A DNA stretch of 64,000 nt from IMG/VR virus record IMGVR_UViG_3300046787_000408, positions 124,001 through 188,000 of that record; one strand, 5' to 3'. Positions 35,477-38,020 of the stretch are shown here, in pieces; the first letter of the stretch is position 1, and each line of letters begins with the position of its first letter. The notes under the pieces are model-generated. The model worked only from the letters and a program-made list of their open reading frames with translations. It did not search any database and had not been told where the DNA came from. The position numbers and the translations under genes were made by a program.

Positions 35477-35738
35477 TTGGATCCGTAGTGACTTTAAGTC
35501 TCACCGAGTTCGCTTTGTTGTTGAGCTTCTTGCTTGGGCTATCAGTATTGGTTGCAGTATTACTATGGCACTCACAGTCCCCAATCCTCCGCTTCTTGCT
35601 CTTTATCCCGTTTGGATCTCTGGTTGCGCTATGTATGCTTGGGCTAGTTGGACTCGGAAATCTTTTGGCATGCTCGCTAACTATATTCTGTTAACCACAA
35701 TTGATAGTGTTGGCCTGATTCGTATGTTGATCCAATAA
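35457..35738 (+). CDS. Small membrane protein
   Basis: Three hydrophobic segments, 93 aa. Confidence 0.7.
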   Translation: MLHSTLDWIRSDFKSHRVRFVVELLAWAISIGCSITMALTVPNPPLLALYPVWISGCAMYAWASWTRKSFGMLANYILLTTIDSVGLIRMLIQ

Positions 35739-35765
35739 AAAAGCCCCTTTCGGGGCTTTTTATTT
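35737..35765. terminator. Bidirectional intrinsic terminator
   Basis: AAAAAAGCCCC-TTTC-GGGGCTTTT between convergent genes. Confidence 0.9.
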
Positions 35766-36071
35766 TTGTGCCGGCTTGCGGGCTCGGGGTTTTTTGGCTG
35801 ATGTAATTGCAGCTGGCGTTGTGGCCGGCTTGGCTGCTGGTTTTGCTACTGGCTTGGCTCGTGGTTTACGAGCAGGTTTAGCAGTGGCTTCGACTCGATC
35901 GTTGGCTGGTTTACCAACTTCAGCAGGTGCGGCCACAACAGGTGCAGCCTCCATCACTGGAGCAACCTGTACAGGTGTTTCCACTTTGTAAGGTACTGCT
36001 TCTGGTTGTACTGCTGGCGCCTGTGCCGCAGGGCTGGGGTTTTTAAACCAATCAAAAATTGCTTTTAGCAT
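35760..36071 (-). CDS. Ala/Lys/Pro-rich protein with a histone-H1/PhaF-like basic tail
   Basis: AKPARKPRAKPVAKPAAKPA...AKKPRARKPAQK; AGGAG SD and TAAATA upstream on the minus strand. Confidence 0.7.
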   Translation of the reverse strand: MLKAIFDWFKNPSPAAQAPAVQPEAVPYKVETPVQVAPVMEAAPVVAAPAEVGKPANDRVEATAKPARKPRAKPVAKPAAKPATTPAAITSAKKPRARKPAQK

Positions 36072-36158
36072 AAAGTTCTCCTATGCAGTATTTACTATCG
36101 ATACAGCAGACACTGTAAAATTAGTGAATGATCACTAAACAGATGCAAGAACGCGATC

Positions 36159-36177
36159 TATGTTGCACTGCAACATA
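36159..36177. promoter_or_regulatory. Perfect palindrome TATGTTGCA-C-TGCAACATA, PhaR-box-like operator
   Basis: 9-bp arms, TGC-N3-GCA core, overlaps TAAATA (36176-36181) upstream of the phasin-like gene. Confidence 0.6.
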
Positions 36178-36257
36178 AATATATGTTACAATAACACATA
36201 GGACGCTGGATAGGCCGGGTTCTATAACTAACTCGCTTAAATTAGGAGAAACACATG
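36176..36257 (+). promoter_or_regulatory. Late-type promoter plus second ROSE-like leader
   Basis: TAAATA; hairpin ATAGGAC-G-CTGG-ATAGG-CCGG-GTTCTAT; CTCGCT-TAAATT-AGGAG. Confidence 0.6.
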
Positions 36258-36530
36258 TTTACAGCAGACGCAATCATCGACACCGTGCAAAACGGTAAAA
36301 AGCAATTTGTCAACACTTTCGTTCAGAACGAAACTGCAAAAGACGCAATGGTTAAATTCATTGACGCTCAAGCTGACTACACCAAGAAGGCAGCTAAAGT
36401 TGGAATGGACACATTTACCACTTTGACTTCAGAAGCAGTCAAAGCCGGACAAGAAGCCATGAAGTTTGATTACACCAAATTTGGTGAAGGCATTATGAAA
36501 GCTTACACAGCTACTACAGCCAAAAAGTAA
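36255..36530 (+). CDS. Phasin-like small amphipathic helical protein
   Basis: 91 aa, Ala/Lys/Thr-rich, no Cys or Trp, helical pattern resembling PHA granule proteins. Confidence 0.5.
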   Translation: MFTADAIIDTVQNGKKQFVNTFVQNETAKDAMVKFIDAQADYTKKAAKVGMDTFTTLTSEAVKAGQEAMKFDYTKFGEGIMKAYTATTAKK

Positions 36531-36547
36531 TACTAAAGTAGTACTTT

Positions 36548-36572
36548 AAAAGCCCCAAATTTGGGGCTTTTT
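36548..36572 (+). terminator. Intrinsic terminator
   Basis: AAAAGCCCC-AAATTT-GGGGCTTTTT. Confidence 0.85.
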
Positions 36573-36575
36573 CAC

Positions 36576-36630
36576 GGTTGACCAAAAATGCCCAATTTGC
36601 TATAATATACACATATTAACGCAAAAGGAG
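36576..36630 (+). promoter_or_regulatory. Promoter cassette variant
   Basis: TTGACC-17-TATAAT-ATACACATA...AAGGAG; first 40 nt match cassette copy 1. Confidence 0.88.
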
Positions 36631-36636
36631 CCAGAC

Positions 36637-36912
36637 ATGAAAGCACTTCAAGCCTACATTGACAACAAGAACAAATACATGGCATTGTTCCAGGGCAAGC
36701 GCATTGATCCCTTGTACGAAGTTCAAACTGCCGCTGGTCGTAAGCGTGTGGCAGAGACAATCGACTGTGCTCTGAGCCCAGAAAATCTAAGCTGTGATGG
36801 TGAACTGCCCCGTGCAGAAGTTAACCGTCGCTATCGTGAACTCACAGCGGCCGCAAAGGACTTGATCAAACTTGACCCTAGCATGGCTCAGTATATGTAC
36901 GAATTTGGTTGA
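36637..36912 (+). CDS. Hypothetical early protein
   Basis: CALSPENLSCDGE motif; behind cassette. Confidence 0.75.
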   Translation: MKALQAYIDNKNKYMALFQGKRIDPLYEVQTAAGRKRVAETIDCALSPENLSCDGELPRAEVNRRYRELTAAAKDLIKLDPSMAQYMYEFG

Positions 36913-36957
36913 CTCAAAATGCCCAATTTGTTATAATATACACATAGCAACAAGGAG
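36907..36957 (+). promoter_or_regulatory. Promoter cassette variant
   Basis: TTGACT-17-TATAAT-ATACACATAGCAACAAGGAG. Confidence 0.88.
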
Positions 36958-37496: not shown

Positions 37497-37525
37497 TTGA
37501 CCAATAATTCCCGTTTTGCTATAAT
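37497..37525 (+). promoter_or_regulatory. sigma70-type promoter
   Basis: TTGACC-17-TATAAT-ATACACATA..AAGGAG. Confidence 0.88.
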
Positions 37526-37749: not shown

Positions 37750-37995
37750 ATGGGCTGGGTAGTTTACGATGTTGATTCTGGTCGCATGATCAAGTATTAC
37801 AAAAAGCCTGGCCCTGCTAAGTCTGAAGTAACACGACAGCGAAAGTTCAATTCAGAAATGCAAGCATCGTATGGCAACCATCGAATGCTCGAGTACGCAG
37901 CCTGCTCCTATCGTGACTATGAAGGACAACTCATGGGTCTGCGTGGTGCAGACTTTAAATTCTGGCAATTTTGCAACGCACAACCCAACACTTGA
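37750..37995 (+). CDS. Hypothetical protein
   Basis: AGGAG SD, 81 aa. Confidence 0.7.
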   Translation: MGWVVYDVDSGRMIKYYKKPGPAKSEVTRQRKFNSEMQASYGNHRMLEYAACSYRDYEGQLMGLRGADFKFWQFCNAQPNT

Positions 37996-38020
37996 CCAAT
38001 AATTCCCATTTTGTTATAAT
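37992..38020 (+). promoter_or_regulatory. sigma70-type promoter (near-leaderless)
   Basis: TTGACC-17-TATAAT, ATG 9 nt later. Confidence 0.85.

Follow-up and report, generated by a model that had tools for sequence, protein, structure and literature searches.

A freshwater jumbo phage gene for a small, predicted all-helical protein lies behind a consensus operator of the PHB-sensing repressor PhaR

A freshwater jumbo phage drives a small, highly conserved, predicted helical protein from a promoter that copies the phasin promoter of its candidate hosts, including a consensus binding site for PhaR, the repressor that senses PHB storage granules, so the phage probably reads the host's carbon stores. 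The site was examined in a 64,000-nt window (positions 124,001 to 188,000 of IMG/VR record IMGVR_UViG_3300046787_000408, a jumbo-phage record of 299,983 bp that is 81% complete). The original prediction described two divergent small genes around a PhaR-like operator and proposed that the phage reads host carbon storage through host PhaR, with a phasin-like protein coating PHA granules and an AKP-tailed protein tethering them. All of the sequence features it described are present where it placed them. Its interpretation is supported only in part: PhaR gating is well supported, a phasin-like product is plausible, and the granule tether is unsupported.

A consensus PhaR operator over a sigma70-type promoter

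The two genes share a 183-bp control region containing a perfect 19-bp palindrome (36159-36177), whose 17-mer ATGTTGCACTGCAACAT (36160-36176) has the arms ATGTTGC and GCAACAT around the spacer ACT. This 17-mer fits the Herbaspirillum seropedicae PhbF motif TG[N]TGC[N]3GCAA exactly on both strands, the B. diazoefficiens PhaR motif TGCRNYGCASMA at 11 of 12 positions and the R. eutropha PhaR motif YTKNTGCRNYGCANMAR at 15 of 17 positions, and it also fits the R. sphaeroides motif cited in that literature. The R. eutropha study accepts up to three mismatches and describes palindromes with a single central spacer nucleotide, and the B. diazoefficiens study lists as a site TGCATTGCAACA, which is the core of one phage relative (locus L005).

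Cellular phasin genes carry the same type of site, and the phage palindrome is the consensus of the sites found upstream of them. Upstream of 27 Phasin_2 genes, some of which lie in phaR-phaP clusters, TGC-N3-GCA occurs at 4.0 per kb in the 300 nt upstream, against 0.64 per kb elsewhere in the loci, with flanks that match those of the phage, for example ATGTTGCATCGCAACAT. On a matrix built from those sites the phage palindrome scores 24.4 bits, above all 33 training sites (maximum 23.7), and the next best hit in the phage genome scores 18.3 bits. The flank-only score is 12.2, against 6.2 for the next best of the 114 TGC-N3-GCA cores in the genome. An independent test set came from the genus of a Polynucleobacter MAG into which one phage contig was binned. 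In this genus 21 of 29 phasin loci carry sites of 17 bits or more, 69-179 nt upstream of the phasin domain, with none of 14 bits or more elsewhere in those loci, and two of the sites have arms identical to those of the phage. Loci from one genome flagged as unpublished were left out.

The palindrome is embedded in a sigma70-type promoter on the plus strand that was not part of the original prediction (36163-36192), with a -35 TTGCAC (36163-36168), an 18-nt spacer and an extended -10, TG-n-TACAAT (36184-36192). The -10 is conserved in relatives and follows 10 nt after the box, whereas in phaP promoters of the candidate host genus the box is followed after 8-9 nt by TATAAT or TACAAT. A TAAATA element (36176-36181) lies inside the spacer and overlaps the right arm of the palindrome by 2 nt. 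The predicted transcript start is near 36199 from the sigma70 promoter and near 36188 from TAAATA, and the predicted end is at 36571.

Conservation of the palindrome in orthologous loci had been named in advance as one of the checks on the reading, and the palindrome is conserved. Of 63 distinct relatives, 32 have a site of 20 bits or more and 42 a site of 15 bits or more, all at -89 to -101, while 182 kb of their flanks hold none of 15 bits or more. The N3 spacer varies freely but keeps R-N-Y. The remaining 21 relatives lack a good box, some having replaced it with unrelated sequence, yet keep the gene, the -10 and the leader hairpin, indicating that PhaR control is dispensable for the function of the gene. 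The 15-bp core of the palindrome is unique in the phage genome. TGC-N3-GCA cores as such are common there (228 on both strands, mostly in coding sequence), and the 16 matches to TG.TGC...GCAA are nearly all inside genes and reflect composition; only this site is intergenic and symmetric, which led to rejection of the idea of a wider phage regulon of PhaR boxes.

No PhaR was found in the 81%-complete phage record; the repressor would be the host's. The host is unknown, and its only links are GC content (45%), the single phage contig in the Polynucleobacter MAG and two others binned into a Bacteroidota MAG. PhaR was found in 23 of 26 and Phasin_2 in 26 of 26 genomes of the candidate genus, but the Bacteroidota MAG has neither, which leaves undecided whether the infected cell supplies PhaR. 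Searches of the record also found no PHB depolymerase (PhaZ), PHB esterase, PhaC, Phasin_2 or other PHB gene that would point to a granule programme.

The 91-residue product

The rightward gene (36255-36530, plus strand; 91 aa) is preceded by an AGGAGA Shine-Dalgarno site (36244-36249). Its AlphaFold2 model (mean pLDDT 85) consists of three helices (residues 2-22, 26-70 and 73-89), which are moderately amphipathic (muH 0.32-0.44), as expected of a small phasin. The family is phage-specific and very widespread, with more than 1,400 clusters at 90% identity and 182 representatives at 50%, on contigs of up to 360 kb from many lake, wetland, estuary and wastewater samples. It was found only on viral contigs: no cellular homologue was detected in 400 genomes of the class, apart from a mis-binned phage contig. 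Searches of GenBank phages returned no DNA similarity and no tblastn match to the 91-aa protein or to a Polynucleobacter phasin. Metatranscriptome contigs of relatives cover the gene, one starting at 36206 and one spanning 36231-36543, although these are assembled contigs rather than raw reads and do not prove transcription or a start site.

Homology to phasins is not shown. A structural match to phasin families had been set beforehand as a test of the reading, and fold searches of the model against AFDB clusters, the PDB and the Atlas returned only generic helical hits, including two 'phasin domain' entries at E of about 1; a sequence profile search of the PDB found only designed helical bundles. 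No family model reaches its cut-off, and the window protein has no Phasin hit in Pfam at E of 1 or less and none in NCBIfam. Among 47 family members, 13 hit Phasin_2 (PF09361) at E of 0.1 or less, against three or fewer for any other family, but the best reaches only 8e-4 at 20 bits, and the hits, at 14-20 bits, stay below the curated cut-off of 24.9 and fall in two different registers. Profile-profile comparison with 27 cellular Phasin_2 domains was null (hhalign probability 0.7%), and reversed sequences score as high as real ones in both directions. In favour of a phasin-like product are the phaP-like promoter, the size and helicity, and the nearest language-model neighbours: of the 100 nearest named Atlas clusters, 70 carry Phasin_2, four carry PHB_acc and one carries PhaE, although the Atlas scores of 0.87 count only as a lead. 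An HU/IHF-like identity (Bac_DNA_binding, PF00216) was rejected, as the hit reaches 17.2 bits against a cut-off of 22.4 in only one of 47 members and the model has no beta strands and hence no beta-ribbon arms.

The leftward AKP-tail gene

The leftward gene (35760-36071, minus strand; 103 aa) has its own AGGAGA (36077-36082, minus strand) and TAAATA phage-type promoter element (36089-36094, minus strand), both conserved in relatives. Its family forms 73 phage-only clusters, and it encodes an N-terminal amphipathic helix (MLKAIFDWF; 11 residues, muH 0.66), an invariant PYK-E motif, a P/A/V-rich linker and a polycationic AKP/KKPA tail. The last 41 residues are 80% A+K+P+R, with 13 K+R and no D or E, and the tail is conserved in all 22 aligned relatives. 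This tail is of the same compositional type as the AAKP/PAKKA tails of the granule-nucleoid tethers PhaF of Pseudomonas and PhaM of R. eutropha, but no phasin or PhaM-like N-terminal domain was found, and Pfam, PHROG and NCBIfam searches returned no hit. In relatives the N-terminus alternates between an amphipathic and a transmembrane-like helix, and the protein looks like a membrane-anchored polycationic protein. It is adjacent to the 91-aa gene in only 30 of 63 relatives, with no association with the PhaR box (18 of 42 loci with a box and 12 of 21 without). A complex prediction of the 91-aa protein with residues 1-50 of the leftward protein scored 0.00 and counts neither for nor against an interaction.

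A proposed PhaR-gated circuit and its alternatives

The evidence is best explained if the rightward gene sits behind a copy of a host phasin promoter. In a host without PHB granules, free host PhaR dimers would occupy the box and block host RNA polymerase, whereas in a host that holds or is making PHB, PhaR would be sequestered on the granule surface and the phage gene transcribed. In this view the mRNA is monocistronic, starts with a conserved stem-loop that probably stabilises it, carries a strong Shine-Dalgarno site and ends at a strong terminator. The product would most likely act as a phasin-like coat on PHB granules, its dose following the granule surface through the same PhaR feedback that controls host phasins. 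The leftward gene is treated as a frequent neighbour rather than as part of the circuit. The analysis itself establishes the sequence features, their conservation and their identity with cellular phaP operators and promoters; PhaR binding, repression and its relief by PHB, granule binding and any benefit to the phage are inferred, and neither PhaR-DNA binding nor granule binding has been measured. The probability of this reading is put at about 0.58, with odds of about 0.75 that host PhaR binds the site and about 0.45-0.5 that the product binds PHB granules.

The main alternative, considered unlikely, keeps the PhaR gating and all of its operator evidence but gives the product a role away from granules, PhaR serving only as a read-out of carbon and energy status that sets the level of, for example, a chaperone-like, nucleoid-associated, membrane-associated or virion-associated protein. 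The lack of significant phasin homology, the many non-phasin genes in bacterial PhaR regulons, the retention of the gene without the box and a conservation (80-97% identity across hundreds of variants) that is unusual for fast-diverging phasins agree with this, while a promoter layout copied specifically from the main phasin gene, the size, helicity and amphipathicity of the protein, its Atlas neighbours and the concentration of sub-threshold hits on Phasin_2 do not. It is less likely still that the palindrome is bound in vivo by a phage-encoded or other host dimeric regulator, or is merely a symmetric -35 region, its likeness to PhaR boxes being coincidental. The unknown host, the abundance of bare cores, the relatives with replaced boxes and the neighbouring dyad, which shows that another, unidentified factor acts in this region, allow this reading, but the match extends over all 17 positions and beats every cellular training site, the site is unique among intergenic regions, follows R-N-Y in relatives and shares position and -10 spacing with cellular phaP promoters, and no PhaR-like protein was found in the 81%-complete phage record.

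Similarly doubtful is the single granule-hijacking module of the original prediction. The recurrent divergent pairing, the polycationic tail and the occurrence of the same kind of tail in some of the cellular phasins sampled (for example loci L033 and L030) speak for it, whereas the missing phasin domain, the N-terminus suggestive of membrane anchoring, the independence of adjacency from the box and a separate TAAATA promoter, with the box about 65-85 bp upstream of it, speak against it. A role of the palindrome as a nucleic-acid hairpin (terminator, attenuator or replication structure) is very unlikely. A terminator scan lists it as terminator-like with an 8-bp stem, and a few relatives show changes that keep the symmetry, but it lies upstream of both transcription units between divergent promoters, has only three GC pairs and no proper T run, unlike the GC-rich real terminators of this phage, and many relatives carry asymmetric arms that still fit the PhaR matrix, such as GCAGCAT and GCCGCAT.

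Relation to known systems

The closest known system is the PhaR-PhaP autoregulatory circuit of PHB-accumulating proteobacteria (R. eutropha PhaR, H. seropedicae PhbF, B. diazoefficiens PhaR and R. sphaeroides PhaR), which shares the operator sequence (TGC-R-N-Y-GCA with TGT/ACA-type flanks and a single central nucleotide), its placement over or next to the -35 of a sigma70 promoter and a downstream gene for a small amphipathic alpha-helical protein (predicted in the phage). It differs in that the phage circuit would be split between two genomes, with one box rather than the two or three seen at many cellular phaP genes, a product that is not a recognisable Phasin_2 member and is far more conserved than cellular phasins, a phage-specific 5' hairpin in the leader and a TAAATA element overlapping the box. 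Phage genes under host regulators of physiological state include those behind PhoB boxes before cyanophage pstS/phoA, NtcA sites in T4-like cyanophages and LexA boxes in prophages. Here the signal would instead be a storage polymer, read through a repressor titrated by a physical surface rather than by a small molecule or phosphorylation. No report of PhaR boxes or phasin-like genes in phages, or of a link between phages and carbon-storage granules, was found in the papers searched.

Given how common the family is, a PhaR-gated, granule-directed function would be an overlooked and widespread way in which viruses exploit bacterial carbon reserves, with a bearing on carbon turnover in fresh waters. 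The box also gives a host-range clue, namely hosts with PhaR, for phages that have no assigned host. A more speculative and unlikely possibility, which the data do not rule out, is that a large and abundant group of freshwater jumbo phages senses host PHB stores through the host repressor PhaR and answers with a phasin mimic that takes over the granule surface, for instance to speed PHB mobilisation and fuel replication in carbon-starved cells, while hundreds of replicating genomes, each with a consensus-strength box, together titrate PhaR and de-repress the host's PHB regulon. This would be the first viral programme aimed at a bacterial storage organelle.

Other features of the locus

The second dyad, TTAGTGA-N4-TCACTAA (36121-36138; spacer ATGA), is unique in the genome and present in 46 of 63 relatives, conserved at a fixed position, with conserved arms and a variable spacer. 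It is an operator-like site without an assigned binder, and is not enriched in 26 genomes of the candidate host genus (10 matches, against 31 for the reversed control pattern). No tRNAs were found in the window.

Further features were absent from the original prediction. A 5'-UTR stem-loop (36198-36225, plus strand) has a 7-bp outer stem, a bulged G, a 4-bp inner stem and a 5-nt loop (MFE -14.4 kcal/mol, z = -2.3). Nothing in Rfam came near the gathering scores, but compensatory changes occur in nine loci and in 59 distinct relatives. Rho-independent terminators flank both genes: a GC-rich hairpin with A/T runs on both sides (35738-35761) is a bidirectional terminator ending the leftward gene and the upstream plus-strand gene, and a 12-bp perfect stem followed by a T run (36548-36571, plus strand) ends the 91-aa gene. 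TAAATA is the most enriched hexamer upstream of ORFs in this genome (10.4-fold, 70 hits), mostly at -40 to -10.

Genomic context and architecture of the control region

The region lies at bases 124001-188000 of a 299,983-bp IMG/VR virus record, estimated to be 81% complete, which is therefore a jumbo phage. Neighbouring genes include ribonucleotide reductase, DNA ligase, radical-SAM proteins and a UvdE endonuclease, and no GenBank phage resembles the region at the DNA or protein level.

The original prediction described two divergent small genes around a shared control region, with a perfect 19-bp palindrome (36159-36177), a second dyad (36121-36138), and TAAATA and AGGAG motifs, and every one of these features is present where it was placed. 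The control region between the two start codons spans 183 bp (36072-36254), and the 15-bp core of the palindrome and the second dyad are each unique in the genome. The leftward gene (103 aa) has AGGAGA 5 nt before its ATG, a TAAATA 6 nt further upstream and a bidirectional terminator at its stop codon, and is a real gene with 73 phage-only relatives, while the rightward gene (91 aa) has AGGAGA and a terminator with a perfect 12-bp stem. TAAATA, present here at 36089-36094(-) and 36176-36181(+), is the most enriched hexamer upstream of ORFs in this genome (10.4-fold, 70 hits, mostly at -40 to -10). It is a genuine phage promoter-type motif, probably a phage-specific promoter resembling the T4 late TATAAATA, although the sigma factor or RNA polymerase that reads it was not identified.

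The genes to the right carry four near-consensus sigma70 promoters (36578-36606, 36909-36937, 37497-37525 and 37992-38020), with TTGACC or TTGACT, N17 and TATAAT, each with an upstream TG. Each precedes a small ORF, forming a cluster of probable early genes with repeated promoter cassettes, and the cassette is highly repeated in metagenomic contigs, with a depth peak at 36584-36617.

The 91-aa protein and its relationship to phasins

The 91-aa protein belongs to a very large, phage-only family of 1,422 clusters at 90% identity, many of them 80-97% identical to the query and located on contigs of up to 360 kb, with 182 representatives at 50% identity. Atlas clusters of the family are viral, and a search of 400 genomes of the class to which a Polynucleobacter MAG belongs found no cellular homologue apart from a mis-binned phage contig. 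An AF2 model built with a 47-sequence alignment predicts three helices at a mean pLDDT of 85, and these helices are moderately amphipathic.

The proposal that this protein is phasin-like was examined in several ways. Neither Pfam nor NCBIfam gave a phasin hit for the protein itself. Among its relatives, 13 of 47 hit Phasin_2 at E of 0.1 or less, far more than any other family, but with scores of 14-20 bits against a cut-off of 24.9 and with alignments falling in two different registers. Comparison with phasin families at the profile and structure level had been put forward with the original prediction as a way of testing it. When 27 bona fide Phasin_2 domains from 18 genomes were compared with the phage family, hhalign gave a probability of 0.7%, and fold searches were uninformative. 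In HMM searches in both directions, reversed sequences scored as high as real ones while shuffled ones did not, and the likeness is therefore that of amphipathic helices in general. On the other side, 70 of the 100 nearest named Atlas clusters carry Phasin_2, 4 carry PHB_acc and 1 carries PhaE, although scores of about 0.87 are leads only. The protein is thus phasin-like in size, fold class and feature space, but it does not satisfy the sequence criterion for membership in Phasin_2.

The palindrome resembles cellular PhaR operators

The strong result of this analysis concerns the palindrome. Published PhaR sites include TG[N]TGC[N]3GCAA, footprinted in H. seropedicae in a paper that also cites CTGC-N3-GCAG for R. 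sphaeroides; TGCRNYGCASMA in B. diazoefficiens, whose listed sites include TGCATTGCAACA and TGCACCGCAACA; and YTKNTGCRNYGCANMAR in R. eutropha, described as degenerate palindromes with a single central nucleotide. The phage 17-mer ATGTTGCACTGCAACAT fits the H. seropedicae motif exactly on both strands, the B. diazoefficiens motif at 11 of 12 positions and the R. eutropha motif at 15 of 17.

This agrees with the sequences found upstream of cellular phasin genes. In the 300 nt upstream of the 27 phasin genes, TGC-N3-GCA occurs 33 times, or 4.0 per kb, compared with 0.64 per kb elsewhere in the same loci, and the flanks are those of the phage site, for example ATGTTGCATCGCAACAT. Two of four phaR genes examined carry such a site upstream, and in two genomes phaR lies directly before the phasins that carry the sites.

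On a matrix built from these 33 sites, the phage site scores 24.4 bits, above every training site, while on flanks alone it scores 12.2, with the next best of the genome's 114 cores scoring 6.2. The next best 17-mer in the 300-kb phage genome, ATTTTGCAACGCACAAC (37968-37984), scores 18.3 bits and lies 7 nt upstream of the -35 of the promoter at 37992, inside the 3' end of ORF 37750-37995, where it may be a weaker second PhaR site or a chance match. The apparent excess of TG.TGC...GCAA in the genome (16 against about 2 expected) lies almost entirely inside genes and reflects composition, only the palindrome site being intergenic and symmetric.

Phasin promoters of a candidate host genus

Phage contigs of this family are binned into bacterial MAGs from a single study, one (L009) in a Polynucleobacter MAG and two (L007 and L008) in a Haliscomenobacter MAG, which probably reflects mis-binning. 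In 26 genomes of the first genus, PhaR was found in 23 and Phasin_2 in all 26. Of 29 phasin loci not used to build the matrix, 21 have a site of 17 bits or more located 69-179 nt upstream of the phasin domain, none of 14 bits or more lies anywhere else in those 3.3-kb loci, and two sites have arms identical to those of the phage. These promoters read box, 8-9 nt, then TATAAT or TACAAT, and the phage reads box, 10 nt, then TACAAT, with TTGCA inside the box serving as the -35 in both. The phage promoter is thus a phaP promoter in design. The Haliscomenobacter MAG has neither PhaR nor Phasin_2, and its two phage contigs have a broken box or none, while the Polynucleobacter-binned contig keeps a 17-bit box; this contrast is an anecdote rather than a test.

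Conservation of the box in phage relatives

Absence of the palindrome from orthologous loci had been named in advance as one of several joint grounds for rejecting the prediction, and this was examined in 80 IMG/VR loci, which gave 63 distinct upstream regions at 63-89% protein identity. Of these, 32 carry a site of 20 bits or more and 42 a site of 15 bits or more, always at -89 to -101 from the ATG, and the three central bases vary freely but almost always keep R-N-Y. The 182 kb of flanking sequence in the same loci holds no site of 15 bits or more. The remaining 21 lineages lack a good box but keep the gene, the -10 and the leader, so that the proposed PhaR control is common but not obligatory. 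Searches of the phage record found no encoded PhaR, Phasin_2, PHB depolymerase, PHB esterase or PHA synthase.

Proposed mechanism

The interpretation offered in the original prediction, a granule-hijacking module read out through host PhaR, is partly supported, its operator component being the strongest part. The sequence features and their conservation were observed directly, whereas the regulatory scheme and the action of the product are inferred from them. In this view, host PhaR represses the 91-aa gene in granule-free cells by occupying the box over the -35, a box that also overlaps the TAAATA element, and in cells with PHB, PhaR would be bound to granules and the gene would be on. If the product coats granules, it would displace PhaR back to DNA, and its amount would then be set by the granule surface, as for host phasins. 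We estimate the probability that PhaR binds this site at about 0.75, while granule binding by the product is more tentative, at even odds or just under. The benefit to the phage is speculative, and could involve mobilising PHB, altering granules that obstruct a large replication cycle, or chaperone-like help.

Phage use of host nutrient regulators has precedents in PhoB, NtcA and LexA boxes. A PhaR box and a phasin-like gene in phages did not appear in literature searches or in GenBank phages. No claim made here rests on the unpublished genome G041.

Leader hairpin, second dyad and transcript evidence

The leader of the 91-aa gene holds a conserved stem-loop with a bulged G (36198-36225), for which compensatory changes appear in 9 loci and, clearly, in 59 distinct sequences from relatives. 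For example, one pair is AU in 32 and GC in 20, and the closing pair is GC in 21, CG in 15 and AU in 14. No Rfam family matches it, the best being ROSE_3 at 21 bits against a gathering score of 43. It would sit at or near the 5' end of the mRNA and is inferred to be a stabilising 5' hairpin. Metatranscriptome contigs of relatives cover the 91-aa gene only, one beginning at 36206 and one spanning 36231-36543, which is weak evidence but fits a short monocistronic mRNA.

The second dyad, TTAGTGA-N4-TCACTAA (36121-36138), keeps its arms and varies its spacer in 46 of 63 relatives, as a protein-binding site would. It is absent from host phaP promoters and not enriched in Polynucleobacter genomes, and its binder, which was not identified, may be phage-encoded.

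The leftward gene

Relatives of the leftward gene share a short N-terminal helix, which is amphipathic (MLKAIFDWF or MFxKIKEFLFGK) in most and hydrophobic (MEIIVLLFLVAV) in some, together with an invariant PYK-E motif, a P/A/V-rich linker and a polycationic AKP tail. Some (P0407, P0440, P0451, P0457, P0460 and P0462; locus L005, 3446-3820) carry a Cys-rich insert of about 45 residues between the linker and the tail, with a conserved CGCGRSxTGxCVGLHKL...EWAxHxDNP motif, which may be a small metal-binding module.

The gene is adjacent and divergent in 30 of 63 relatives, independently of the PhaR box, and has no phasin or other known domain in the Pfam, PHROG and NCBIfam searches. It is interpreted as encoding a membrane-anchored or surface-anchored protein with a polyanion-binding tail, expressed from a TAAATA promoter. 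The PhaF/PhaM-like tethering role suggested by the original prediction is possible but has no support beyond tail composition. A complex prediction with the 91-aa protein gave no verdict, and a two-gene module is considered unlikely. Some cellular Phasin_2 proteins (loci L033, L030 and L022 of the class sample) end in APAKK-type or other K/R-rich tails, so the phasin plus polycationic tail architecture occurs outside Pseudomonas PhaF.

In phage relatives (loci L002-L004, left of the gene pair, and L043-L045, right of it), CsgF, CsgG and FecR-domain genes are carried next to the pair, a ClpP protease gene recurs 2-3 kb downstream, and fatty-acid desaturase genes flank the pair in others, only the pair and its control region being syntenic.
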